From Amphiscolops sp. MND2022 (lineage: Eukaryota), in NCBI GenBank assembly GCA_964187785.1, contig OZ076418.1, forward strand, positions 12,276,001 to 12,340,000: DNA of 64,000 nt. Direction: 5' to 3'. This document shows, in pieces, positions 4,664-24,049 of this stretch. The notes under the pieces are model-generated. The model saw only the letters and a list, made by a program, of their open reading frames with translations. It was not told the DNA's origin and made no database searches. A program made the position numbers and the translations under genes. Position 1 is the first letter of the stretch, and every line of letters starts with the position of its first letter.

Positions 4664-5902
4664 GTGAGAATGATCTATACTACTTCTTCCTTGTGTCACG
4701 TAAATGTAACATCTTAAAAGAAAACATAAGATAATCAATCGAATCTTATTACAAGTTTATCATCAATTTTTCTCACAAGTTGGATCTTTTTCCTTCAACC
4801 CCCCCCCCCCCCCCAACACGCTGTGAACGCCAATTTTTTACCTAATGAAATGTGTTCAATTGTAACTTTTAATTGATTTTCAAACAAATAAGGCACTGTA
4901 TTTTGCTGACACCTCAAAAAAATGCATAAAATGCTATCTTTTTGGCATTATTTTCTAATATTTCATTAGTGTTTGTCATGTGTGGGGGAGGGGGAAAGAA
5001 AAAGTTCCCACTAGTTAATGTATTGTAGTAGATAATAGTAACTGGTCTGATAAAGTTTTTTTTCACAGGCACGAAAAGAAGTCCAATATTCGACGCCAAA
5101 ATCGGCACAACAAAGCACAACAGCAGTTCTGAAAACACCTCGCCCGAAGACTTCCAGTGATGTTTCCATCAAAAGCAAGAGGAAGAAGAAATTGTCAGAG
5201 AGTTCCAGTGATTCATTCCACCCAGATGATGACCACAGCTCGTCTGCGGCATCGCCTACTCCAGGTAAAAATAGTGCCAATAGTAACAAAGCAGGCTCTA
5301 TCGATAGAAAGAAATTCATTGAGACCCTTACCAACTTGACAGTGGAAGAAACGTACTCCCACACAAGCAGAAGAAGCATTGAAGCTGTTCACTGGTCTGC
5401 AGCTCATCGTGGAGAAAAAGGACGCCATCCGCCAGATTCGAGATGCTGGAATAAAGCTCACTATCCAGCAAGAAAATTTGATTTATTTAAAAATCAAGTG
5501 GGCTTGCTTTTCTCACCTACCAAAAAGTGGCCAATTATGATGAGTTTCTGGGATGAATAATGATAACAAGTTTCTTGGACAAAACTTGGTTGTTTTTGTT
5601 GTTGTTTGCAGCATTGTTGAATGTTTTTTTTTGGTATTTTTAGAACCGACCAAATATGTTTTTGGCATTGTTATTTTTGAAACTTTGAAAGATTTGGAGA
5701 TTGAAGATAATTCCTTTAGTCTCAAGCCGTTTTTCGTATAGCAGTTTTTGGCTGACTGAGAAAGAAGAATATGTACCTGTTGTATTTTACTGTTTGACGG
5801 AATAAGCAGTCTCGAGAAAATATTTGTTCGGATTGATATTTGTTTTAGTATGTCTTTACAATCTTCGAGCAAAATCAGAAAAAAAGTAATTTTTTTTCAG
5901 GA

Positions 5903-6160
5903 ATGCTGAAATTTTTTGTGGAGCAAAATGTGTGTGTGAACAACACCGGTTTTTCAAAAGGTCTGTCTGGGACGTATCAAGAAGAAAAAACAGCTCAAAT
6001 TCGGAAACACAACTTCATGGAGACTAAATTGAAGGAACTGAAACAGCAGAGTGAATCGAATCTTTTTGACGACAGCTATGGGGACGGCAGAGGCTTGAAC
6101 ATTGAAAGACTCTGGCGGTATCATTCACTCTTGGATGGACCAGAAGTGTGCTGTGGATAA
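5903..6160 (+). CDS. Hypothetical short ORF or exon in the repeat unit (also at 7335-7592)
   Basis: Preceded by a TTTTTTTTCAG acceptor-like site and open in two copies. No recognisable domain. Confidence 0.25.
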   Translation: MLKFFVEQNVCVNNTGFSKGLSGTYQEEKTAQIRKHNFMETKLKELKQQSESNLFDDSYGDGRGLNIERLWRYHSLLDGPEVCCG

Positions 6161-6385
6161 CTGTTCTGCTGTGGTACAGTGAATTCACTCAATAATTTCC
6201 ATTCATCTTATACCCCAGAAGCGATGCAAATCAGAATCATATATACACCACATGATTTGTCGTGTACTTGCTGGCAATGATGTACGGAATTTTGCAATCA
6301 ACAATCAAAAATACTGCTGTTGGGACGAACAACGCAGGGCTTAAACGTGTGTTTCTGGAACGAATACCAAAAGACGTTGAATGAT

Positions 6386-7818
6386 GCATTATTTTCTAAT
6401 ATTTCATTAGTGTTTGTCATGTGTGGGGGAGGGGGAAGGAAAAATTCCCACAAGTTAATGTATTGTAGTAGATAATAGTAACTGGTCTGATAAAGTTTTT
6501 TTTCACAGGCACGAAAAGAAGTCCAATATTCGACGCCAAAATCGGCACAACAAAGCACAACAGCAGTTCTGAAAACACCTCGCCCGAAGACTTCCAGTGA
6601 TGTTTCCATCAAAAGCAAGAGGAAGAAGAAATTGTCAGAGAGTTCCAGTGATTCATTCCACCCAGATGATGACAACAGCTCGTCTGCGGCATCGCCTACT
6701 CCTAGTAAAAATAGTGCCAATAGTAACAAAGCAAGCTCTATCGATAGAAAGAAATTCATTGAGACCCTTACCAAGTGGAAGAAACGTACTCCCACACAAG
6801 CAGAAGAAGAAGCATGGAAGCTGTTCACTGGTCTGCAGCTCATCGTGAAGAAAAAGGACGCCATCCGCCAGATTCGAGATGCTGGAATAAAGCTCACTGT
6901 CCAGCAAGAAAAATTGATTTATTCAAAAATCAAGTGGGCTTGCTTTTCTCACCTACCAAAAAGTGGCCAATCATGATGAGTTTCTGGGATGAATATTGAT
7001 AACAAGTTTCTTGGACAAAACTTGGTTGTTTTTGTTGTTGTTTGCAGCATTGTTGAATGTTTTTGTTCGTATTTTTAGAACCGACCAAATATGTTTTTGG
7101 CATTATTTTTGAAACTTTGAACGATTTGGAGATTGAAGATAATTCCTTTAGTCTCAAGCCGTTTTTCGTATAGCAGTTTTTGGCTGACTGAGAAAGAAGA
7201 ATATGTACCTGTTGTATTTTACTGTTTGACGGAATAAGCAGTCTCGAGAAAATATTTGTTCGGATTGATATTTGTTTTAGTATGTCTTTACAATCTTCGA
7301 GCAAAATCAGAAAAAAAGTAATTTTTTTTCAGGAATGCTGAAATTTTTTGTGGAGCAAAATGTGTGTGTGAACAACACCGGTTTTTCAAAAGGTCTGTCT
7401 GGGACGTATCAAGAAGAAAAAACAGCTCAAATTCGGAAAAACAACTTCATGGAGACTAAATTGAAGGAACTGAAACAGCAGAGTGAATCAAATCTTTTTG
7501 ACGAAAGCTATGGGGACGGCAGAAGCTTGAACATTGAAAGACTCTGGCGGTATCATTCACTCTTGGATGGACCAGAAGTGTGCTGTGGATAACTGTTCTG
7601 CTGTGGTACAGTGAATTGACTCAATAATTTCCATTCATCTTATACCCCAGAAGCGATGCAAATCAGAATCATATATACACCACATGATTTGTCGTGTACT
7701 TGCTGGCAATGATGTACGGAATTTTGCAATCAACAATCAAAAATACTGCTGTTGGGACGAAAAACGCAGGGTTTAAATGTGTGTTTCTGGAACGAATACC
7801 AAAAGACGTTGAATGATG
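6386..7818 (+). repeat. Copy 3: head-to-tail duplication of the 3' ~1.44 kb of the unit
   Basis: Matches 4945-6385. The ORFs at 5903 and 7335 are near-identical (offset 1432). The junction reads GAATGATGC|ATTATTTTC. Confidence 0.9.
6509..6976 (+). CDS. Putative last exon of the recombinase gene: S/K-rich linker plus small helical (Myb/SANT-like?) C-terminal domain
   Basis: Acceptor TTTTTTTCACAG|GCA is in phase 0 with the donor at 4663. The frame is open to TGA 6976 (ARKEVQYSTPK...EEEAWKLF...IYSKIKW). The homologous exons at 2125 and 5069 differ by several 3-nt indels plus one frameshift each. Confidence 0.5.
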   Translation, partial: ARKEVQYSTPKSAQQSTTAVLKTPRPKTSSDVSIKSKRKKKLSESSSDSFHPDDDNSSSAASPTPSKNSANSNKASSIDRKKFIETLTKWKKRTPTQAEEEAWKLFTGLQLIVKKKDAIRQIRDAGIKLTVQQEKLIYSKIKWACFSHLPKSGQS

Positions 7819-8752
7819 CTACTGGGACGAAAGAAGCTCAAAGGATTTCGATGATGTGTTTTCCTGGAACGAATATGTGTTCTAAGGTTATTTACATTTT
7901 CTTATTGTTCTTGTTGTGGATTCACAGCTTCCACTTTTCATTTTGCAGGGTTGGAAAATTTCAAAACATATTTGAAACTACGAGATTTTGACGAAAACTC
8001 TTCGATATCAGAAATGGGCTGACTTTGGCACATTACCTCAGAGTATTTTCCCATAAAAACCATGGGACTTATTCTTAATGTTTCCATCCATCTTCCACAT
8101 TTTTCAGCTGGAATCGAAAAGATATTCGGCACATTGCTAGTTCCATCATTGCAAAAACAGTTCAAAACACCTCTTCAGTAATGAAAATCAATTCATAACG
8201 AACAAATTTGAATTTTTTTCCAACCCCGTCTTTTTGTTCAAATATATATCAAATTCTCCTCAACTTTTCCTTGCCATTCGCCTTTAGCTGCTCCACTTTA
8301 GCTTCTGCAAAAAAGGGCAAAGGGTTAGACAAGGAACCAACACCGTTGCTTAACAAGAATAATTACTGTGTCATTTCAATGATTTGGGAGCTGTCGTACT
8401 TATAAAGCCCACCCAAACTAGTCCCTCAGAAGCGCAAAACGCTACTACTCTTTTGATTGCAAGGCGCCAGTAGTTGTACGCAATGCGCCATTTCGGTCTC
8501 GCAAATCGCCAGTAGTGCAAATCGCCAGCAAAAAGCGCCATTTTTCTTTGGTTTTGATTGTTGACCTAATAGTTTATTTTATTGTCTTTGCAAAATCACC
8601 AAAGTGCTTTTTAATCATTCCAAACAAGTTCCCCGAACTATCTGAGGCATTTGCGTGAGTGCGAACGTTAAAATTTTGCATTTAAGAGAGATATAATCGA
8701 AAAATCACACACAGCGCCAGTTCCGGAGGTACGCGAAACGCCCGAGCGCAGA

Positions 8753-8774
8753 AGTAGTAGTAGTAGTAGTAGTA
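8753..8774 (+). repeat. (AGT/TAG)n microsatellite, ~7 units
   Basis: AGTAGTAGTAGTAGTAGTAGTA is directly visible. Confidence 0.9.
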
Positions 8775-9107
8775 TACTTCGTGGGGCGCTGACGGCTCCT
8801 ATGGCTGCCCTCAGCGACCGAGGCCCATTGAGCATAGGACCCCGCAGCGCCCGATTTTCAACCCCGGCTTGTAGAGGCCGCCTATCGATACCGCAGTTAT
8901 AATAGATGCTACAGCATTCAAATACAAGCTCCCAAAAAAATCAGGCCATTCCAGTTCGGTCTAAGACAAAAACGCGGGCATATGTAGTAAGGGTTCCAAA
9001 AAATACTACGTGCGGGCGTACACGGCGTTTCGATTACTACGTGCGGGCGATGACGGAATTTTTTAGTTCTGATGTTTTTAAAATATTTTTAAAGCCTTTA
9101 AATCGCT

Positions 9108-9668
9108 TTTTAGTCGGCGCTTTTCGAAGAAAAACGCAGACTATAGTAGTGACTTTTTTTTAAGACCAACGAACTGACAGATTTTATAAAGAGTTATAAA
9201 TAGCTGAGCTGACTTACAGTAACTGCACTAACAGTAACCGCAACGCTAGCTATCACTGCTAGCACTTGGCATAGAGGTTAATTAGGCTTTTTGAGGTCTG
9301 CCAAGCAGAAGGACGTGGGTTCGAGTCCCGTCCTTGATCAAATTTTTTTGTGCAGGTTTTTTTCGGCTTTGTGAGACTTTTTTCGCAAATTTTTTTAATG
9401 TCTCCGAAGGGTCCACCCTTCATTTTGTTTTCTATTTTGCATAAGAATGGATGTTCAAAACCTCCCAAAGGGCCCCTTTTACAATTTTTTGGCACTATGC
9501 GACTTACCGGAGACCAAAAAATTTCGAAAAAAAAATTCAAAAAAGTTCGGATTTTTTAAAATTTTTCCTCACGCGGGTACTGTAGGAGAGAATACTTGAA
9601 ACTTTGAAGTCTTTTTGCTATTTTTGAGCCTTAGATATGGCGCCGACTCGGGCCGTTCCCGGCTTGTT
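9108..9668 (+). mobile_element. Helentron-associated non-autonomous element (HINE/DINE-1-like)
   Basis: 5' subterminal AGTCGGCGCT and 3' inverted GCGCCGACT, followed by the short hairpin GCCG-TTCC-CGGC and TT/T-rich ends. Dispersed copies occur elsewhere in the window. Confidence 0.6.
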
Positions 9669-9750: not shown

Positions 9751-10269
9751 TTGAAGAACTTGGCTTTGACCCTGTTTGATGAAATCATCAATTCGCTGTC
9801 CCAAATCGACCCGTTTGAAGACCCATTATCCCTTCAAGAGGTATTAGTTGATTGTCAAATTGATGTAGCACAACAAACAAACCCGCCGGAGTCAGAAAAT
9901 TTTCTGGAAACAGGAGTTGATATTGACCAAAATGCCAAAAGTGTCAGTTTTGAAGCGAATTTGGGTGAATTTATCCTTGAAAACGTGCTCCAGGTGGGCT
10001 CCTCTGGTGCCAATCTGGTCCCAGAGGGCTCCACCCATGACGAGAACATCGAAAATCAATCTTCGGATGAAAATAGCTCTCCTGAAACTAATATTAGAAA
10101 CGATATCTACGATGGAAGGGTCAAATGCATCATTTGCACATCAGCCGTTTTGAAGATGAGGAACCATATAAACACGGTTCATAGATGTATAGATGCTCGT
10201 ATTCGGACATACCTCATTGCCTACTACCGCAATCTTGGCAAAAACGATGTCTGGGACTGTCGCAACTGA
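9751..10269 (+). pseudogene. Acidic, C2H2 zinc-finger-containing ORF fragment
   Basis: CIICTSAVLKMRNHINTVH is a C-x2-C-x9-H-x4-H finger after an acidic low-complexity tract. No ATG start; stops on both sides. Confidence 0.4.
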
Positions 10270-10274
10270 GACTC

Positions 10275-10379
10275 CGCTATACCCTTGTCGAGTAGATACA
10301 GAATCAGTCCTGCACTACTTATTCTTTTGCCCCCTGTACGACCAGTTTCGTGCGCCCGAACTTGCCACAGGAAACATCT
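10275..10379 (+). mobile_element. LINE ORF2 C-terminal zinc-knuckle fragment
   Basis: PCRVDTESVLHYLFFCPLYDQFR resembles the C..ET..H.LF.CP.Y...R motif at the end of LINE ORF2. Confidence 0.5.
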
Positions 10380-10615
10380 AGTTGGCTAGATTTTATAAAA
10401 CAATTTTAACGCAAAATGTGTCAGCCAATCAGAACGCTCGTTAGTTAGCGTAAGTCCACACCCAAACGAGGTCCGAAAAAATTTCAAAACTTTTATTTTC
10501 GATGCTGATTACAACGCACCAAACCCGAGCTCGATCGGAGCTGTGTACGTGAAGTTGACTTTTTGACTTTCCCTCAAGAAAGTAAGGTCGAGCTATCTTA
10601 GAAAAATTTCAACAT

Positions 10616-10940
10616 TGTAAATTGTGTATATTTCCCTTTGGAAATTCAATGTATATTTCCCTGTGGAAATTCTCTCCGAATTCAATCTGATCCAAACGAG
10701 ATTTTTAACAGAAAGAGATTCAATTAATGCTAGAAGAACGGAACAATCAGAGTTAAAATGTGGGAACTAGCTAATCTGAATGGTTGAAAACAAAACCAAA
10801 GAATTTTACCGCACAAACGTGTGAACAAAAATCAAACTTCATACGTGAAACAATATGATTAGTTGCATGAACAGCATGGCAACGTGTCAGATAAACATGT
10901 CTAGAATAAAATTGAACAAACAGAAATTTTGGCGTTAACA
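10616..10940 (-). repeat. 3' LTR of BEL/Pao element 1
   Basis: Direct repeat of 17156-17478 with about 10 substitutions and one 2-bp indel by eye (~96-97%). PPT GGGGCGGAGTA lies immediately upstream on the minus strand. Confidence 0.95.
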
Positions 10941-11011
10941 TACTCCGCCCCTTGGACTATCAGTTCAATATAAATGGTCTCAATATATATATGGTCTTTC
11001 AGAGTGTGAAA

Positions 11012-11809
11012 ATGCGATCAACCAGATCACAAGCTGTGCGTCCGAGTGGCGATGACGCCTTGCGTGAGCTCTTCACAGAGGTGGAGAAGGGGGCGGTAAG
11101 GAGCAAGCGCGTGTCAAGGGGGGCCGGACCATCGGAGATCGTCGTCGGCGAGCCCTGCGTGGTGTCCTCATCTGTGGTGACGCCCAGGGACGGGCCACTG
11201 GACTTGTCTCTGTCCCCAGATGAATACCAGCAGCGATATCCATGGAATGACCACCCAGTCACGGGAACCTGCAGCCGAAAGGAAGACTTCTCGTTTGGGA
11301 GCATCTGCTACGAGTGGGTACGGCCAGACGGGACAGACGATTTCTTCCGCTGCAGTTGGGAACGGGGGGCGCCAGTGAAGCCTTCAATGCTCCTCACAGT
11401 CGGCAAGAGCTGCAGGGGTTTTCACCAGGATCTGGATCCCCCATACGACCAGATCAACACGGTCGTGGGAGGGAAGAAACTGTGGCTCTTCACTCAACCA
11501 AGGAGCCGAGTGACCACACGAGTGATTCGAGGTGGCTGGGCTTCGACCGTGTGGGAAGTGCTCGGTTGTATGAAGGACCACAAGGAAAGCCATCTCATCA
11601 GCTATGGCGTGCAGTCTGCTGGTGAGAGTGTGTACGTTCCTTAGGGATGGGGTCATGCTGTCGTCACCGACACCGATGACAAGTGCTGCCTGCAGATCGT
11701 GGAGTTTGCTTGCCAGCAGTCGGAGTTGGATTTCCACTACGGTCGTCTGCGGGACCATGCCTCGGTGGGGGTTCGCAGAGGGGACGTGGTGAGTGCGACG
11801 TCATTATGA
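11012..11809 (+). CDS. JmjC-domain Fe(II)/2-oxoglutarate oxygenase (~265 codons, one in-frame TAG at 11642-11644), antisense within the BEL/Pao element
   Basis: GFHQD (HxD, H at 11423), QINTVVGGKKLWLF, QSAGESVYVP*GWGHAVVT (distal H at 11654). The frame continues past the TAG to TGA 11809. Confidence 0.8.
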
Positions 11810-11869
11810 CTAGGAGGTAAGATAAGTCATTTCATAACTTCATTGCATGTAAACTAATTGATATGTCAA

Positions 11870-12790
11870 TCAGTTATGTTGAGAATTAGGCAGAGGCAAT
11901 TTTCTGAGCTTTCTCACTGGTCGTGTGAACTTCCGGCCGTTCATAACAACTTCCACGACCCGAACAAGCCCATCATTTCCCTTGAAGGTGTTGGTAACCT
12001 TCGCCAATGGCCACTGTAAAGGTTTCTGATTTTCCTCGGCGACATACACAACATCACCAATTTCAAGATTGCGAGCTGGGTATTGCCATTTGGACCGTAT
12101 CTGATGCCTCAGCAGGTACTCCTTCATCCATCGTCTCCAAAAATGCTGCTTCAGGGAGCACACTTCGAAATTCTCAAGTGACATTGATTTTTCGGGTATG
12201 AAAGTTAGTGGGCCTCCTATGAGGAAGTGTCCGGGCGTCAGAATGTCACCATCACTAGGGTCGTCAACCAGGGCTGTCAGGGGCCTGGAATTCAAGAGCG
12301 CTTTGATCTGGATCAGCATGGTTGACAGTTGTTCGTATGTAAGAATGATGTTCCCCATCAACTTCCTCAGAATGGTTTTCGTACTTTTGATTCCTGCTTC
12401 CCAGAGACCTCCGAAGTTGGGTGCTCGGGGTGGAATGGTGACCCAATTGATTGCCTGGTTTTCAAGATATGCTGTGATATCACTGAGATTCGTCTTGTTG
12501 CTCCAGAACTCTTGTATTTCTAATAATTCATTTCTGGACCCCAGAAAGTTTGTGGCGTTGTCGCTGAAGATTGTCTTCGGGATTCCTCGTCGACCGATGA
12601 ATCGCTTCAAGGCAGCGATGCAGGCATCTGTGGTAAGCTCTGACACAAGCTCTATATGAATTGCTCTGGTAGCAAAGCAAATAAGCAATGCAACGTAGGC
12701 CTTGTCAGTTTTGTTTGGCCCGACTCGTATTGTGAGAGGTCCGGCAAAGTCTATCCCTGTATTGGTGAACGGTCTTGCTGGAGTGATCCG
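11870..12790 (-). CDS. BEL/Pao integrase core and C-terminal domain (frameshifted from the upstream pol segment)
   Basis: TGIDFAGP, ICFATRAIHIELV, SDNATNF, APNFGGLWEAGIKS, LTPGHFLIG and WPLAKV...DGLVRVV motifs. Confidence 0.95.
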   Translation of the reverse strand, partial: RITPARPFTNTGIDFAGPLTIRVGPNKTDKAYVALLICFATRAIHIELVSELTTDACIAALKRFIGRRGIPKTIFSDNATNFLGSRNELLEIQEFWSNKTNLSDITAYLENQAINWVTIPPRAPNFGGLWEAGIKSTKTILRKLMGNIILTYEQLSTMLIQIKALLNSRPLTALVDDPSDGDILTPGHFLIGGPLTFIPEKSMSLENFEVCSLKQHFWRRWMKEYLLRHQIRSKWQYPARNLEIGDVVYVAEENQKPLQWPLAKVTNTFKGNDGLVRVVEVVMNGRKFTRPVRKLRKLPLPNSQHN

Positions 12791-15093
12791 TTCCTCGGGT
12801 AAGTCTCTCCCATTTGCTGTTCAACAGCTTTACTGTTGAATCGGAAGCATTTGATGCAGTTTCGTATGTTATTCTTGACTTTCACTCGAGCGCGGAGAAT
12901 CCAAGATTTTTGCTGAAGATGGAACAAAAATTGTTGTTGACCCGAGTGCAGTGTTTCTTCATGCGCCTCGTGGATCAATAGCCTTGCCAGTGGAGTGTCG
13001 CCATCCAGGAGAATGGGGAATTTCTTGCTGTAAGGGTAGTTGGACTGAGATAACCTCCCCCCAACACGAAGAAGACCTGTGCTATCTTCAATGAAAGGAT
13101 TCAAACTCCGAATTTTGCTAACTCTAGTCAATTCCTGGTTTTTCTGCATCCTTTCTAGCTCGGATTGAAACGAATTAGCTTGTTCGCTTGTCAGGATCTC
13201 AATACGAGCTTGTTCGATATCGTCAATCGATCGGGGAGCACACTTAGAAAATTTTCCCTCTTTGAAAATTTCAATCGCCTTCCGAACAAGTGCAAATGTA
13301 CGAAAGAGTCGTTTCGATGAGGAGAATCTAGTAATCTGGATTACCTCTGAAGGGAGCGTAGAAGGCATCGAGAGCACTTGCTTGTTCTGCTTGACCTCCA
13401 AGTCGGTCTGTTTGGAGATTTGTTGCTGCTTGGGCCAATTTGTAGAGTCTTGAGACAGCCAAGTCGGACCGTTCCACCACAATCGGAAATCCTTGAGGCT
13501 CGGTATGTCCAACCCACGTGAGGCACAATCGGCTGGGTTGTCAGCAGTTCCAACGTGGTTCCATTGATTAGGCGGTAAGACTTCTTGAATTTGTGAAACT
13601 CTGTTGGCGACGAAGCAGTTCCATCGTCTCGGCAAACTTGAGATCCATGCTAATACTATTGTAGAATCTGTCCAAGCGACCCTGCTGTTGATGACGAATC
13701 CACCTCGTTCCAAGGCAATGCTGGTGGCCTTCATCAACTTGCTAGCTAGTAGAGCTGCACACAACTCCAGTCGAGGCAGACTAACTGATTTTACTGGAGC
13801 GACTCTTGTCTTTGCTGCGAGCAACTTTGTTTCAATGCTATCACTGGTTGTGATTCGGGCGTAGATGGCCGTGGCATAGGCACTCTCTGAAGCGTCTGCG
13901 AAGACATGTAGCTGGATTTCTTCCTTCCGGTGATAGGACACTTGTCGAGGAAATCGAATTCCGTGAAGATTCTTGAGTTCTTCGTGAGTAGCTTTCCAGA
14001 TCAAGTCAATATCTGGAGGAATGGGCTCGTCCCACTTCAAACCTCGTGTCCAGGTGCTCTGCATCAGAATCTTCAACTTGATTGTACAGGGTGATAGCCA
14101 GCTCATAGGATCAAAAACTTTAGCAATTTCGGAGAGTAAGATTCGCTTCGTTGAACCGTTTTTGTACATTCCTCGATATTGGAAATTTAATGTGTCGCTG
14201 CTGGGACACCACGCAACTCCGAGTGTTTTGATTGTGTAGTCATCCTTCTGAAGGTCTAGAACGGCCTTGGTTTCACGGAGAGCTTCAGGTAGGTCTTCCA
14301 CAACTTGGGGAGCACACGATGACCATTTTCGCAATGGAAGTCCGAATTCATTCAAATGCTTTAATAGTTTTTCTTGCAGTGTCTTGGCTTCCTCTACTGA
14401 TTCTGCACCAGTAAGAAGATCATCTACGTAGAAATCGTTCAAAATAGGTCCTTTAACATCTGGGTCAGTTGAGTGATGTCCAGCTTCTTGGAGTGCGCGT
14501 ATTGAGTGAAATGAAGATGAACTGATTCCATACGTCACGCGTTTCATTCTCAGATGAGATACGTCTGTTTGGGATTCAAATTTCCACAGGATCCGGTGGA
14601 AATCTTTCGCGGGAAAATCGAGCTTGATCTGTCTGTACATTTTCTCCACGTCTGCGGACAGAGTCACTGCGTGGACTTGGAAACGCAGGAGAATTCCAAA
14701 GATGTCGTCTTGTATCGTTGGACCAATCATTAGATTCTGGTTTAAGGAACGATTACTCGATGTTTTGGCTGAGCCATCAAATACGACACGCAGCTTTGTG
14801 GTCGTGCTGCTATCTTTCATCACGCAATGATGAGGAAGGTAGTTTGATCGATTGGGTTCTATTGGGATCTCATCAGAAGGGATCATTTTCATGTGATCCA
14901 TTTGGAGGAATTCCTCTATAAAGTCTAAATATTTCTTCTTGAGGTCAGGATTTCTCTCCAGCTTCTTCTCAAGCTGATTGAAGCGCTGTCTGGCTGTGGC
15001 TAGGCTCTCACCTAGGGGTTCTGTATCACGTTTGAAGGGCAAGGAAACCTCCGGTTTCATCTCTTGTCGTAGTTTCCTTGAAGTGATCTTCAC
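12751..15093 (-). CDS. BEL/Pao reverse transcriptase, RNase H and integrase Zn-binding region (780-codon open segment)
   Basis: YLPHH, LRVVFDGS, YVDDLLTG, LHVFADASESAYA, AKTRVAP, LPRLELCAA and H..H...C..C motifs. Confidence 0.95.
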   Translation of the reverse strand: MKITSRKLRQEMKPEVSLPFKRDTEPLGESLATARQRFNQLEKKLERNPDLKKKYLDFIEEFLQMDHMKMIPSDEIPIEPNRSNYLPHHCVMKDSSTTTKLRVVFDGSAKTSSNRSLNQNLMIGPTIQDDIFGILLRFQVHAVTLSADVEKMYRQIKLDFPAKDFHRILWKFESQTDVSHLRMKRVTYGISSSSFHSIRALQEAGHHSTDPDVKGPILNDFYVDDLLTGAESVEEAKTLQEKLLKHLNEFGLPLRKWSSCAPQVVEDLPEALRETKAVLDLQKDDYTIKTLGVAWCPSSDTLNFQYRGMYKNGSTKRILLSEIAKVFDPMSWLSPCTIKLKILMQSTWTRGLKWDEPIPPDIDLIWKATHEELKNLHGIRFPRQVSYHRKEEIQLHVFADASESAYATAIYARITTSDSIETKLLAAKTRVAPVKSVSLPRLELCAALLASKLMKATSIALERGGFVINSRVAWTDSTIVLAWISSLPRRWNCFVANRVSQIQEVLPPNQWNHVGTADNPADCASRGLDIPSLKDFRLWWNGPTWLSQDSTNWPKQQQISKQTDLEVKQNKQVLSMPSTLPSEVIQITRFSSSKRLFRTFALVRKAIEIFKEGKFSKCAPRSIDDIEQARIEILTSEQANSFQSELERMQKNQELTRVSKIRSLNPFIEDSTGLLRVGGRLSQSNYPYSKKFPILLDGDTPLARLLIHEAHEETLHSGQQQFLFHLQQKSWILRARVKVKNNIRNCIKCFRFNSKAVEQQMGETYPRNGSLQQDRSPIQG

Positions 15094-17081
15094 AATCGAT
15101 TTCTTCTTGACTATATTTCATAGCAGCAGGGAGTTCTTCCAGCTCCCAGAAGCGAGAGAGCTGGGCGTCTGTAGAAACGTGATGAGATCTCACTTGACTC
15201 GAAGGAATCTTCGTTTGACCTGTCACTACCCATCCGAAAACAGTGTCTTCCAGAAAAAAGTTTTCATTTTCCTGAATCTTCCCTCCAAGTGTGAACTTCT
15301 CTGTGACATCCGCTCCGGGGAGGACGTCAATTGACGACGGTTCATTGAATCGAGGATCGGCTAGTTTCAAATTTGCAAGATTCTTGAATTGCGATTGAGG
15401 CACTGGAGATGAGGGTAGGTTGTTTGTGATCTTCGTGAGGACGAAAGCCTTCACAATGACTATTCTCTGCTTGACGATAACTGGTATGTCGACAGTGGCT
15501 CGAGATTTGACCTGGTTTTCACTTCCAAGGCCGTTAATCTCCATGTAGTTGCGTTTCTTCGAAAGACCAAGTGTTTGAACACATGATTCAGTGATACAAC
15601 TGATTTCTGATCCTGAGTCGAAAAATGCTCGGCAATACACTGAAGTGTTTGCTCGGCTCTGAACTGGTATCATTGCTGTAGGCAGCAAGGTCTGCTTCGA
15701 GAAGGTATGAGAAGAATGGTTACTAACACTTGCCGAACCCCTTGTCTTTGAAGATCTAGATTCATGACCCCGTGGTCTTTGCTGATGAATGAGAGTGTGG
15801 TGTTTGCTGCCACACGTCCGACACTTGTACTGACTCGAACACTCGCTTGCTGTGTGTCCCTTTCTAAGGCAGTTGTAGTAAAAGCCCTTAGATTGCACCA
15901 TCTTGAGTTTGTCTTCTATGATGAGATCGTTGAAGGTTTGGCATGCTTGGATTCTATGATTCTCTCCGCAGCGAAAGCATAACTCTGCCACGCCAGAGTA
16001 CACGCCTGTCTTCGAGGAGTCGTTTTCTAGAGGCCTAGATCCACTGAAACGCCACTGGGAGGACGTCGTTTCGCTGGAATGCTTCGCGGATGCAGGAAGC
16101 ACACTATGAAATTTCTGTGATTTTGACACCTCACATGAACTTTCTAGTGCTCTACATCGTGTCTCAAGGAAGTCCTTGAACTGGTCATACGTTTGTAAAT
16201 CCGATCCAGTAGATGACAATTCCCACTCCTTACGAGTCTCAGGATCTAATTTTTCAGTGACCAAGTGTAGAAGTAGAAAATCACATTCCTTGACGTTGAC
16301 TCCTTGATTTTCCAGAGCTCTTCGATTTTGGTCCAGAATTTCTTGAACGTTTCTCAGTATTCGCACGTTCTCTTGATGACCCTTCGGAATAGACATCATG
16401 GCTTCAATGTGCGCTTTCACCAGTGCTCTCTTATTCTGAAATCTGTCATTGAGAATGTCTCGAGCGATTGCATAATTTGCGTCGGTAACGGTGATCGATG
16501 AAAGCAATCTCGCGGCGTTTCCTTTTAGAGCTGTTTTCAGATAGTGCAATTTCTGCGAATTGGACAAATTTGTGTTATTGTGTACGGAGGATTCAAAAAA
16601 TGTCACGAAATGAAGTCCATTCGAGATAGTTTCCGTCAAAGTTCGCTAACTGCATAGTGGGTAGTTTCAATTTCGCGCTAGACATCATCGGGTTGGCTGT
16701 GGAAGCTGCTTGCACTGAGGCATCCAATGAGGTTTCCTCGAGTCGTCTTCTCATTTGCTTGAGCAAATTTCGTACATCGATAGAATAGCCCGATGCAGCA
16801 TCAACCTCGTTCTCTAGATCCACGTCTTTCACCAGTTCTTCGATTTGCTCGTTCTTCGATTCAACGTCTTTGAGCTTGAGGGTTATTGCTTCCTCCAAAC
16901 GCTCAATCTCTTCTTTCTGTGAAGTAGTCAAGGCATGACCTGGAATACTGAGAAGGGCTTCCGAGGCTCTGGTGAGTCTTGTGATGACTCCTTTGTGCGC
17001 TGATCGCGACTTGTTGAGTCTAGTCAGCTGCTGTTCATCAGTGGTTGATGAACCAGTTTGTGCGCGTTCTGGGCTTGACAT
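15026..17081 (-). pseudogene. BEL/Pao gag plus aspartic protease (frameshift at ~16620)
   Basis: LPTMQLANFDGNYLEW (DUF1759-like gag motif), three Zn knuckles (CFRCGENH..C, NCLRKGH....C, CRTCGSKHHTLIH) and protease FFDSGSEIS. Confidence 0.9.
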
Positions 17082-17155
17082 ATTGAAAGGAATGTCACAG
17101 AGGACGAATTGATCTTCTTTTCCGGTTTCTGTATCCCTGGTGGTCGCGGCACCAA

Positions 17156-17478
17156 TGTAAATTGTGTATATTTCCCTTTGGAAATTCAATGTATATTTCC
17201 CTGTGGAAATTCTCTCTGAATTCAATCTGATTCAAACGAGATTTTCAACAAAGAGATTCAATTAATGCTAGAAGAACGGAACAATCAGAGTTAAAATGAG
17301 GGAACTAGCTAATCTGAATGGTTGAAAACAAAACCAATGAATTTTACCGCACAAAGGTGTGAACAAAAATCAAACATCACACGTGAAACAATATGATTAG
17401 TTGCATGAACAGCATGGCAACGTGTCAGATAAACATGTCTAGAATAAAATTGAACTAAAAGAAATTTTGGCGTTAACA
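17156..17478 (-). repeat. 5' LTR of BEL/Pao element 1
   Basis: Starts TGTTAACG and ends TTTACA on the minus strand. Followed by the PBS TGGTGCCGCGACCA (17154-17141; resembles the complement of a tRNA-His 3' end). Confidence 0.95.
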
Positions 17479-17755
17479 AACATCAAATGTCAAAATTTCA
17501 ACAGCTTCGTTCTCCACTTCTACTGGTCCGATTTAGTTCATTTAAAAAGCAGCGTACTCAGCTTTGAAAGACCTTTCCAACGAGGGGTCGTAGAGAGCTG
17601 TAGCTCACTTGGTGGCTGAGAAATGATTTTTCTCGCTTCTGATTGGCTGAGAGCGGGCGGAGCTGAACGAAAGCGCCAAAATGCAGAAAAAAGTGATTTT
17701 CTTCACGTACAGACCTTATAGCAGCCTAACTTAAACTTTTTCGAGCTCAGCTAAG

Positions 17756-18547: not shown

Positions 18548-18840
18548 CTTAGCACTGGGGAAACTTTTTGCGGTACCCGTGCTAAGTTCTCCTCTATTTA
18601 CTCTACTTTTGATTTTACTCTCAGCATTGGGGAAACTTTTTGCGGTACCCATGCTAAGGCTCCTTTCCTTCCGTTTACTACTACTACTCTCTTCTCACTT
18701 TTTCCTTACTACTCACTTAGTACTGGGGAAACTTTTTGCGGTACCCATGCTAAGGCTCCTTTCCTTCCGTCTACTATTACTCCTCTCTTCTCACTCTTTC
18801 CTTACTACTCACTTAGTACTGGGGAAAGCCATGCTAGATG
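18548..18840 (+). repeat. Four tandem hairpin-containing repeats (~70-95 bp period) between ORF1 and ORF2
   Basis: The core CTTAG(C/T)A(C/T)TGGGGAAACTTTTTGCGGTACCC(A/G)TGCTAAG occurs at 18548, 18620 and 18716, with a partial copy at 18812. Confidence 0.85.
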
Positions 18841-21510: not shown

Positions 21511-22894
21511 AACACTCACTAACTAGCCGAAAAGAAAGAAAAAGCGGAAGACCCCAGTGATTGAAGTCTTAGAATAGATGGACTGATGAACTGAAGCAAC
21601 TAAGACGGACTAAGTTTCATGAGGTTCCGGACAGTGTGGCTAACACGGGAACTTGGCGAGTCCACCCAGGCGTTCGAGCAAGAGGATTCAGTTGGATAAC
21701 CCATATCTGACCTCAAACCCATGTCCTGAGCTTTCTCTACAGCACCATGCGCCTCAAGCAGAGCTATCACCACAGTACACCGGATCTTCCACCGAAGAAA
21801 CTTGGAAGTCACTGGGATTCGAACTCGATCCCTCAAGCCCACTGCTAATTGAGCTAACCACTATGCTAGAACTAGATGAAGTCAGCCATTCTAAACTCGA
21901 CTACATTCAGACCTACACTAACCAAGGAACTTCAATCTCAAAGATCCCTACCCCCACCATTGTCCCCGTAACCAAGCCCATCAACATCTCCCTGGAACCA
22001 AGCCCTCCCAGCGAAGCAGCGACCTCCTGTTGGTACGGGATCAAGAGGGGATGGATGGAGGTGCCCCTCTTACTAGGTCAACTCAAAGAAATTTTTCAAC
22101 TTTCAAGCTCCAAGCAACTTCCTAACAACAACAACCAAGAATCAGCCCTGGAACCAAGCCCGAAACTCCACCAAGCCCCATGACTAACACAGCACAGCTG
22201 ACCAACAACCAAGCAACCAACTACCACAAAGATCCCTACCCCTCATTTAGAAACTCCCCTGAAACCAAGTCCCACGCAAACCACCCCTGCAACCAAGTCC
22301 CCATCCCCCTGTAGGTGAAGCGGCCTCCCGTTGGCTAGGGACCAGGAGAGGATGGACGGAGGTGCCTCTCCACTAAAAGCTCAAAGCAATCAACTCAACT
22401 CAACACTGACTCAACCAACTCTTCACTTCGAACAAAGCTCAACCAAATTCCACTGACTAGAGACCAAAACCTAATCGCGTCCCAACTCCTACCCACATCA
22501 CGTCACTCCAACCCTAGACTGGATAGAGAATTCCAAGAAAAGCGTAGTGTTTTAAAGACTCCCTCCTCGGAGGGATGTCTGATAAACCTGTCTAGCGTTC
22601 CGCAGGACACGCTACAACATATACATTAAACTTTTTCTAGCTCAGCTAAGTTAGACGCTTCAAACGAGACCTCAAGGGGCATTGTAGCTTGCTTAGTTGG
22701 CGAGATTTTATAAATCATTTTTAACGCAAAAAGTGTCAGCCAATCAGAACGCTCGTTAGTTAGCTCAAGTCCACACCGAAACGAGGTCCGAAAAAAATTT
22801 CAAAACTTTTATGTCTGGGCGCTTGCCATCGGTTCGGTACAGTCCACGCAGTTCGAGCATTGAAGGCAAGTCGAGGGATCCCAACGTCTGGTTT

Positions 22895-23437
22895 AATGTT
22901 AGAGTTTCATTTATAGAGTTTCATTGATTATCAGTATTTTGCTCCCCACCTATCGGCGTTGATGCCTAATTAGTTTCATTTATTATCAATATTTTGCTCT
23001 CCACCCATCGGAGTTGGTGTCTAATTAGAGTTTCATTTATCATCAGTACTTTTGCTCTCCACCCATCGGAGTTGGTGTCTAATTAGAGTTTCATTTATTA
23101 TCAGTATTTTGCTCTCCACCTTTCGAAATTGATGCCTAATTAGAGTTTCATTTATTATCAGTATTTTTGCTCTCCACATCGGAGTTGGTGTCTAATTAGA
23201 GTTTCATTTATTATCAGTATTTTGCTCTCCACCTATCGAAATTAATGCCTAATTAGAGTTTCATTTATTATCAGTATTTTTGTTCTCCACCCATCGGAGT
23301 TGGTGTCTAATTAGAGTTTCATTTATTATCAGTATTTTTGCTCTCCACCCATCGGAGTTGGTGTCTAATTAGAGTTTCATTTATTATCGGTATTTTGCTT
23401 TCCACCTATCGAAATTGATGCCTAATTAGAGTTTCAT
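22895..23437. repeat. Minisatellite, ~10 copies of a 57-60-bp unit
   Basis: Unit TTAGAGTTTCATTTATTATCAGTATTTTGCTCTCCACC, followed by one of two interspersed variants (CATCGGAGTTGGTGTCTAA or TATCGAAATTGATGCCTAA). Confidence 0.95.
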
Positions 23438-24049
23438 TTAATAAGGTGAATCATAGTTATTTTGAGAAACCAGCTCAGATAAAACGGCTATTTTTTCAAG
23501 GGTACCAGATAGATGATGTTTCACAGACGAGTAACCTAAAAGATTGGATGAGCAACGTTTACCTGCATATTTAGCTTGAATAGCCGGTGCATAGGACGAT
23601 TCGAATTCGTCCACGAAATCCAAATGCAGTAATTCGCACTCCTTAGAGCTGCAATAAGTATCTGGGTCTGTGTCGGATTTGATGGGGCATGCACATACGG
23701 TGTAACGGCCAAAATCTTTACTCGATACTTCTGAAAATTTCACAATACCCATGTAATATTTATCATTGCCATCAAAATATTTGTCACAGATCAACATGAA
23801 TCGACTCCTATCTTGTAGCGTTAACACCTCCGTTTTCAGCCTCTCATTCGAACTAATTTTGACAGAAAAACGGTATGCCCTTTTCAAACTGTCGCATTCC
23901 AAATCTGTGTACACTCGAAATCCAAAAGAATGGAGTGTTGCCCCAATTGTGGATTCCAAGCCTTTATTGTAAAAGTAGTCTGTGTTGTCATAGTCGGGGA
24001 CGTTTCCAATCGTAGAATATTCAAAGCGTCGAAAGCAGTTTACACGCAT
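23438..24049 (-). CDS. Hypothetical 203-aa Cys-containing protein (possible Ig-like beta fold)
   Basis: Long ATG-initiated ORF in AT-rich DNA. KDFGRYTVC resembles the Ig D-x-G-x-Y-x-C strand motif. No other support. Confidence 0.35.
   Translation of the reverse strand: MRVNCFRRFEYSTIGNVPDYDNTDYFYNKGLESTIGATLHSFGFRVYTDLECDSLKRAYRFSVKISSNERLKTEVLTLQDRSRFMLICDKYFDGNDKYYMGIVKFSEVSSKDFGRYTVCACPIKSDTDPDTYCSSKECELLHLDFVDEFESSYAPAIQAKYAGKRCSSNLLGYSSVKHHLSGTLEKIAVLSELVSQNNYDSPY

Follow-up and report, generated by a model that had tools for sequence, protein, structure and literature searches.

A JmjC-fold gene carried antisense in BEL/Pao and Gypsy-type LTR retrotransposons: a candidate accessory oxygenase with a possible role against silencing

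Introduction

Can a retrotransposon carry, on the strand opposite to its own genes, an enzyme of the JmjC class, and what might such an enzyme do for it? The question is raised by a 64,000-nucleotide stretch of the Amphiscolops sp. MND2022 genome (assembly GCA_964187785.1, contig OZ076418.1, positions 12,276,001 to 12,340,000 of the forward strand), here called the window and numbered from its first letter, in which a BEL/Pao long terminal repeat (LTR) retrotransposon lies on the minus strand and a plus-strand open reading frame (ORF) of 265 codons, 11012-11809, stands between its integrase and its 3' LTR, on the opposite strand to gag-pol. Hosts silence retrotransposons largely via repressive histone methylation; few transposon counter-measures are known, and we know of no JmjC enzyme among them. 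A sequence-only reading of the window had taken the ORF for a JmjC oxygenase gene that travels with the element, and had proposed an anti-silencing enzyme. In the analysis reported here there is high confidence that the ORF represents a real, selected and element-borne gene for a protein of JmjC fold. The best explanation as a whole, an accessory gene of the BEL/Pao element that encodes a JmjC-type oxygenase dependent on Fe(II) and 2-oxoglutarate (2OG), is considered probable, and the further step to a histone demethylase used against silencing is advanced tentatively, by analogy.

Transposition of the ORF with its host element

The minus-strand ORFs of the host element match the Pfam families DUF1759, Peptidase_A17 (Pao), RVT_1, Integrase_H2C2, rve and DUF5641, and with Pao-type gag-pol, LTRs, target-site duplication (TSD), primer binding site (PBS) and polypurine tract (PPT) all present the element is a BEL/Pao LTR retrotransposon. 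By repeat search and pairwise alignment the two LTRs are ~10 substitutions and one 2-bp indel per 325 bp apart, and the PBS starts with TGG one base inward of the 5' LTR. The earlier description of a complete element holds for both LTRs, the PBS, the PPT and the AACAT TSD, but not for the coding part, which is degenerate: no single intact gag-pol frame is left, gag, pol and the integrase core together occupying four frames, two of them taken up by gag, and the integrase, out of frame with the upstream pol, is 9 residues short relative to that of a sister copy (L002). The JmjC ORF has its ATG 72 bp off the LTR edge, in agreement with the ~70 bp given earlier for this antisense ORF, and its TGA at 11807-11809, tail-to-tail with the integrase stop codon 60 bp away. 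It is also, as had been noticed, richer in G+C (GC) than pol, with GC 0.587 and third-position GC (GC3) 0.675, where gag, pol and integrase have GC 0.45-0.47.

Searched at the DNA level, the 1.07-Gb source genome contains the window's subfamily (A) at six loci with 96-99% nucleotide identity across the ORF, five of them full-length or nearly so and one ending after ~182 bases. In five copies the homology to the window sets in precisely at base 10616, the outer end of the LTR, beyond which the flanking sequences are unrelated; these five copies are therefore independent insertions and not segmental duplications, and the ORF moved with the element, as had been claimed, to at least five independent insertion sites. 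In three sister copies, L002, L003 and L004, all 265 codons are open, and the ORF again stands at this site and faces the integrase tail-to-tail; of the other copies of the subfamily, a fourth is frameshifted around codon 51 and a fifth carries an internal deletion. The junctions of the ORF with the PPT and with the integrase stop are the same in all copies and in the diverged subfamilies described below, and a repeat check around the ORF found no terminal inverted or direct repeats that bracket it, nor a TSD of its own. Because these LTR-edge junctions are shared and bracketing repeats are absent, the ORF is cargo of the element and not a nested insertion.

Decay of the window copy and selection on the gene

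The copy in the window is dead: its ORF is stopped at codon 211, its substitution pattern is neutral, and its gag, pol and integrase stand in different frames. The JmjC protein is 92-95% identical to those of close sister copies, and comparison with the intact sister ORFs gives 14-20 non-synonymous and 2-8 synonymous differences (14 and 3, respectively, against L002), with omega, the ratio of non-synonymous to synonymous change, at 0.75-2.5. Since these counts match the neutral expectation the window ORF is read as decaying, and it looks like a neutrally decaying pseudogene inside a frame-shifted element.

Among the intact sister copies, which are 7-20 substitutions apart, omega is 0.31-0.42, and one pair has an excess of synonymous change (P ~0.01). 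Copies free of the TAG and with omega below one, for which the sequence-only reading had asked, thus exist in L002, L003 and L004, and the ORF is neither absent from all other copies nor neutrally decayed in all of them. Between lineages the non-synonymous proportion of differences (pN) is 0.2-0.5, with the synonymous proportion (pS) saturated at 0.72-0.84, a pattern that indicates purifying selection between lineages. Invariant in the 11 aligned own-genome sequences (alignment A1) are H138, D140, P143, G154, K156, W158, F160, Q201 and H215.

Identity of the protein

The H-x-D motif, the lysine and the distal histidine of a JmjC enzyme lie where they had been placed in the window ORF (Table 1). 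The two pieces of this ORF, each searched alone, find no match in Pfam, and the JmjC assignment consequently rests on intact relatives and profiles; the Pfam search suggested earlier is thus negative for the window itself and gives JmjC by way of these relatives. The Pfam JmjC cut-off is passed by L038 (25.3 bits), whose host, placed via its relative L069, is probably a Gypsy-type element, and by L070 (27.3 bits), whose host is BEL/Pao. Alignment A1 contains own-genome sequences only, and alignment A4 contains 60 sequences, with relatives taken at E<=1e-10, of which 28 match Pfam JmjC on their own. Some cellular JmjC proteins are possibly included in a further alignment, A3, and for this reason the PDB profile search was repeated with the stricter A4 and with A1. 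In a single-sequence PDB search with the window's subfamily the best match is JMJD6, at E=0.1. The A1 profile matches KDM7 (7e-5), PHF8 (2e-4), PHF2 (3e-4) and JMJD6 (7e-3), and the A4 profile PHF8 (4.3e-9), KDM7A (1.8e-8), ceKDM7A (4e-7), PHF2 (1e-4), KDM2A (2e-4) and JMJD6 (5e-4). The PDB matches listed for A1 and A4 are JmjC enzymes exclusively, and a language-model search likewise gave matches in JmjC/Cupin_8 clusters.

H138 and D140 are conserved in at least 90% of the 60 relatives of A4, and the metal-binding triad is aligned to those of KDM7, PHF8 and JMJD6. K156, which in the motif G-x-K-L-W occupies the position of the lysine that contacts the 2OG C5-carboxylate, does not vary in A1, is conserved to 90% or more in A3 and is aligned to the corresponding lysine of KDM7 and JMJD6. 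An AlphaFold model based on 90 sequences has a predicted local distance difference test score (pLDDT) of 87 and a predicted template modelling score (pTM) of 0.86; an earlier model from 11 sequences, with pLDDT 50, was set aside. Foldseek, given the predicted model, lists nothing but JmjC enzymes among its 50 best PDB matches (E 4e-9 to 2e-7); the VIA-align Z scores of the model, over 180-238 of its 265 residues, are 15.2 for PHF2, 14.9 for ceKDM7A, 14.7 for PHF8, 14.3 for both JMJD5 and KDM7A, 14.0 for KDM2A, 13.7 for FIH, 13.6 for TYW5 and 13.5 for JMJD6. Pfam finds no PHD finger or other domain in the intact JmjC proteins, and the N-terminal part of the model aligns only to the region that flanks the JmjC domain. 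The protein is predicted from the model to be a stand-alone JmjC-fold Fe(II)/2OG oxygenase of ~265 amino acids with an intact catalytic site, and the KDM7/PHF8/PHF2 histone lysine demethylases come nearest to it in modelled fold and in profile.

Spread of the gene among LTR retrotransposons

A profile of the 11 own-genome sequences has at least 137 matches in the source genome, and most of the full-length ones are free of stops. In subfamilies B (L008/L009) and C (L010/L012) the JmjC protein is 34-48% identical to that of the window's subfamily, and the ORF has the same position and orientation beside BEL/Pao integrases that share 55-60% identity with that of the window. Subfamilies A, B and C, together with the BEL-borne L065, form the only supported clade of the family tree (96/95), and this clade is consistent with co-descent of the JmjC ORF with the element. 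In subfamilies D and E no pol is found within 1.5 kb of the JmjC ORF. A profile search of 1.84 billion representative proteins gave 257 matches at E<=1e-3 and 70 at E<=1e-10; none of the ten matching protein clusters that were looked up is named, and all ten come from ENA or Logan assemblies. One of the relatives, the 7.5-kb metagenome contig L070, has an intact Pao gag-pol of 1755 amino acids and an antisense JmjC ORF right after DUF5641, as in the window, and in L066 and L069 the JmjC ORF is antisense and downstream of a Gypsy-type pol (RVT_1, RT_RNaseH and integrase). As judged from sequence, the JmjC gene is common to two LTR-retrotransposon superfamilies, BEL/Pao and Gypsy-type; the earlier view of a BEL/Pao cargo is confirmed as such, but its scope was too narrow for what is a large family that extends to Gypsy-type elements. 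Because the backbone of the tree is without resolution, no direction of transfer between BEL/Pao and Gypsy is assigned.

Some members of the family have unusual layouts. In L067, a BEL/Pao element on a TARA scaffold, an 851-bp terminal repeat (1111-1961 and 8273-9123, 99.6% identical) has its start within the JmjC ORF; both LTRs thus code for the catalytic 165 residues of the C-terminus, and the element-internal N-terminus is found only at the 5' LTR copy, a layout that may be an artefact of metagenome assembly. L008/L009 (G000:C8:48063137-48067089) consists of two identical JmjC-integrase-partial-pol units in tandem, 3173 bp apart, the first of which ends at pol residue 461, and from this arrangement appears to be a rearranged or nested pair of subfamily-B elements. 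In subfamily F (L035, L036, L038 and L051 of the own genome, with a relative, L069:6090-15791, in a Gypsy-type element) the JmjC gene is flanked by further ORFs: on the pol strand one with a weak Macro-domain match (Pfam Macro E 0.003-0.01, below cut-off) and, on the far side of the JmjC gene, small ORFs, one of them with a heptad region weakly like that of coronavirus S2 (E 0.0035) and another that by eye looks membrane-spanning. The host of subfamily F is possibly a retrovirus-like element that carries env and several accessory genes.

Upstream block and expression

Because the gene is antisense it is not translatable from the genomic RNA of the element and requires a transcript of its own, and because the two stop codons are 60 bp apart this transcript must end within integrase-antisense sequence. 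The spacer of ~70 bp from the PPT to the ATG contains a TATA-like box, CAATAWAA, and then YTTCAGA shortly before the ATG, in the same order in subfamilies A and B and in L065. These are the only conserved upstream signals, and they lie inside this element-internal spacer and not in the LTR, from which the sequence-only reading had derived the antisense transcript. The TATA-like box is part of a 17-bp tandem duplication, 10968-10997 (ATATAAATGGTCT / ATATATATGGTCT), in subfamily A only; it is single-copy in B. By its motifs the spacer block could be a minimal TATA/initiator promoter, or it could be the 3' splice site of an intron in the 5' untranslated region with a first exon in the LTR; inspection of the LTR by eye found no convincing splice donor. 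A GTGAGT that resembles a donor, located at the window ORF's 3' end, was rejected, as it does not recur in the sister copies.

Proposed function and alternative explanations

Placed antisense between integrase and PPT, the JmjC ORF would be copied with the element RNA and expressed from a separate transcript, which would start at the short conserved TATA-like/TCAGA block adjoining the 3' LTR. The JmjC protein would be catalytically active and of benefit to the element. Its most likely action would be to take repressive lysine methylation off chromatin, namely the KDM7-type marks H3K9me2/1, H3K27me2 and H4K20me1, and the loss of these marks would counter heterochromatin-based silencing of the element. 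Put in general terms, a family of LTR retrotransposons in animals (BEL/Pao, which gave the gene to Gypsy-type elements or received it from them) may encode its own histone lysine demethylase that erases H3K9/H3K27/H4K20 methylation, from an antisense gene with its own promoter by the 3' LTR; this is a conceivable proposal that is still on the doubtful side, and its demethylase step is drawn only from the fold and the nearest relatives.

Several observations weigh against this proposal or against parts of the evidence beneath it. The intact sister copies of the window's subfamily score only 18-18.6 bits with Pfam JmjC (PF02373, cut-off 24) and ~20.1 bits with Cupin_8 (cut-off 27.4). The deep alignments are built on unannotated metagenome ORFs, with the host element examined for a few only. 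The window's subfamily amounts to five or six copies with few substitutions, which makes the test for recent selection a weak one. The N-terminal PHD finger of KDM7/PHF8/PHF2 reads H3K4me3, and this reader, which targets KDM7/PHF8, is absent from the JmjC protein. As to expression, four RNA runs with the same species label have zero reads anywhere on 6 kb of the element and are thus uninformative on the ORF, and a seawater metatranscriptome in which 24% of the words sampled from the ORF occur has no strand information and might represent element genomic RNA. Finally, structural matches to demethylases (Z 14-15) and to the hydroxylases JMJD5, FIH, TYW5 and JMJD6 (Z 13.4-14.3) are nearly tied, so that the fold does not by itself choose between a demethylase and a hydroxylase substrate.

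The same element-borne gene may then, with equal reserve, be thought to encode a protein or RNA hydroxylase of the JMJD6, FIH, JMJD5 or TYW5 kind, with a host factor, a protein of the element or an RNA as its substrate (e.g. splicing or export factors, or tRNA). A JmjC domain alone, without readers, is what JmjC-only hydroxylases have; JMJD6 is first in the single-sequence PDB search; the hydroxylase Z scores come within 1-2 units of the top; and subfamily A has, in the alignment as read by the author, an asparagine at the position of the 2OG-binding Asn197 of JMJD6. Against this, the strict family profile prefers PHF8/KDM7A to JMJD6 by about five orders of magnitude, and the best structural matches, PHF2, ceKDM7A and PHF8, span almost the whole protein. 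What probability the demethylase and hydroxylase readings leave over falls to another activity or to none.

Explanations that deny the gene a role in the element fare poorly. A one-off capture of a host gene fragment, now decaying and with no element function, would suit the premature stop and neutral pattern of the window copy as well as a subfamily of only five or six copies; it is nevertheless very improbable in view of the three intact sister copies, the homologues that occupy this position both in other samples and in BEL lineages whose integrases are 55-60% identical, the invariant catalytic residues, a pN well under pS between lineages, and an identity of only 12-16% to the nearest cellular JmjC structures, and its spread by segmental duplication is contradicted by the unrelated flanks of the copies. 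That the ORF belongs to another element, inserted into the BEL/Pao copy, or is an adjoining host gene, might be suggested by a GC content 12 points over that of pol, and is scarcely tenable for an ORF that lies inside the LTR pair and TSD, has no terminal or direct repeats around it, and keeps the same PPT and integrase-stop junctions in all copies and in diverged subfamilies. There remains the thought that conservation comes from constraint on the sense (minus) strand, as a 3' untranslated RNA signal or a sense ORF, with the plus frame incidental. The region does belong to the genomic RNA of the element and is overlapped by minus-strand ORFs of 101 and 124 codons; these are short, as GC-rich DNA would give, the substitutions are codon-like in the plus frame, and it is the plus-frame protein that is confidently predicted as a JmjC fold with its catalytic residues in place, all of which makes such a constraint a most unlikely source of the conservation.

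Relation to known systems

The KDM7A/PHF8/PHF2 enzymes share with the JmjC ORF the H-x-D...H triad and the lysine after the G-x-K motif, and are its best profile and structural matches (Z 14.3-15.2 over 220-238 of 265 residues), at an identity of only 12-16%. They are, however, encoded by host genes, with 900-1100 amino acids and a PHD finger, whereas the retrotransposon protein has ~265 amino acids and no reader domain. The JmjC-only hydroxylases (JMJD6, JMJD5, FIH, TYW5 and JMJD7) are single-domain JmjC proteins like that of the retrotransposon, with Z scores of 13.4-14.3, but their profile E-values are weaker than those of KDM7/PHF8 (5e-4 for JMJD6).

Among accessory genes of retroelements, the nearest in kind is that of Phalaenopsis Ty3/Gypsy elements, in which an ORF for an AlkB-type 2OG dioxygenase has m6A RNA demethylase activity in vitro and was proposed to counter host control (PMC9289625). 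There too an extra Fe/2OG dioxygenase ORF is fixed in an LTR lineage; the orchid case differs in being from a plant, in its AlkB rather than JmjC fold and in having its activity shown, the JmjC case being known from sequence and model. Bdelloid rotifer LTR retrotransposons are reported to have third ORFs past pol that encode a GDSL esterase, a DEDDy exonuclease, a dUTPase or env, of types common to unrelated retroelement groups (PMC5408684), a sharing that recalls the JmjC gene in BEL/Pao and Gypsy-type elements; the abstract of that report has no JmjC, and the word "jmjc" is absent from its text. Plant Ty3/Gypsy and Copia elements are likewise reported to have additional ORFs downstream of pol and before the 3' LTR (PMC7264820), placed like the JmjC ORF and in some cases antisense as it is; the abstract names no function for them, and "jmjc" is absent from that text as well. 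Full-text literature searches, with most subscription journals outside their coverage, yielded no paper that describes an LTR retrotransposon with a JmjC gene. Accessory ORFs as such are known; what appears to be new is that, in BEL/Pao and Gypsy-type elements of animals, such an ORF encodes an enzyme of a class not described among them before.

Organization of the element and other features of the window

The features of the host element are collected in Table 1.

Table 1. Parts of the BEL/Pao element and of its antisense JmjC ORF, in window coordinates
Feature	Position	Strand	Remarks
3' target-site duplication AACAT	10611-10615	.	pentamer recurs at 17479-17483
3' LTR, 325 bp	10616-10940	-	direct repeat with 17156-17478; TG...CA read along the element
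Polypurine tract (plus strand = complement)	10941-10959	-	adjoins 3' LTR; near-identical in diverged subfamilies (L008, L065)
Upstream block of antisense gene: TATA-like box 10969-10975, 17-bp tandem duplication 10968-10997, YTTCAGA 10996-11002	10960-11011	+	motif order kept
JmjC ORF codons 1-210, with H-x-D 11423-11431 and 2OG-binding Lys 11477-11479	11012-11641	+	
In-frame TAG	11642-11644	+	sister copies L002, L003, L004 open at the same position
JmjC ORF codons 212-265 and TGA, with distal His 11654-11656	11645-11809	+	
Integrase core and C-terminal part	11870-12688	-	Pfam rve, DUF5641; convergent with JmjC ORF
pol: reverse transcriptase, Pao Peptidase_A17 region, integrase zinc domain	12751-15093	-	Pfam RVT_1, Peptidase_A17, Integrase_H2C2
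gag (DUF1759) and aspartyl protease region, own frame	15026-16639	-	Pfam DUF1759 2e-31
Leader and N-terminal gag ORF, another frame; PBS ~17137-17154	16593-17155	-	
5' LTR	17156-17478	-	direct repeat with 10616-10940; TG...CA read along the element
5' target-site duplication AACAT	17479-17483	.	matches 10611-10615

The BEL/Pao element is flanked by a 116-nt direct repeat, 90% identical, at 10379-10494 and 22694-22809, 12.3 kb apart; the pair may be pieces of another repeat family that was hit by the BEL/Pao insertion. Directly outside the 3' LTR lies a plus-strand ORF of 172 codons, 9751-10269, with a Cys/His-rich C-terminal stretch. Elsewhere in the window, 4900-7600 has near-identical ORF sets spaced ~1.43 kb (e.g. 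5903-6160/7335-7592 and 5192-5560/6632-6976), a recurrence that suggests a unit duplicated in tandem. At 22914-23443 about 9 units of 57-58 bp, 60-96% identical, form a tandem array, and two 96-bp tandem units, 93% identical, are found at 18620-18811.

Conclusions

A selected JmjC gene that is present in many lineages and in two LTR superfamilies with its catalytic site intact points to an enzymatic accessory function that favours the element. The family is without a name in the protein collections searched, and offers a compact JmjC scaffold of ~260 amino acids for biochemistry. Were the enzyme a hydroxylase, it would uncover a new target, of host or element origin, within the life cycle of retrotransposons. 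If instead the substrate is histone methyl-lysine, the gene would provide a direct and testable case of a mobile element that removes its own silencing marks, and would be the first known chromatin-erasing anti-silencing enzyme carried by a retrotransposon.

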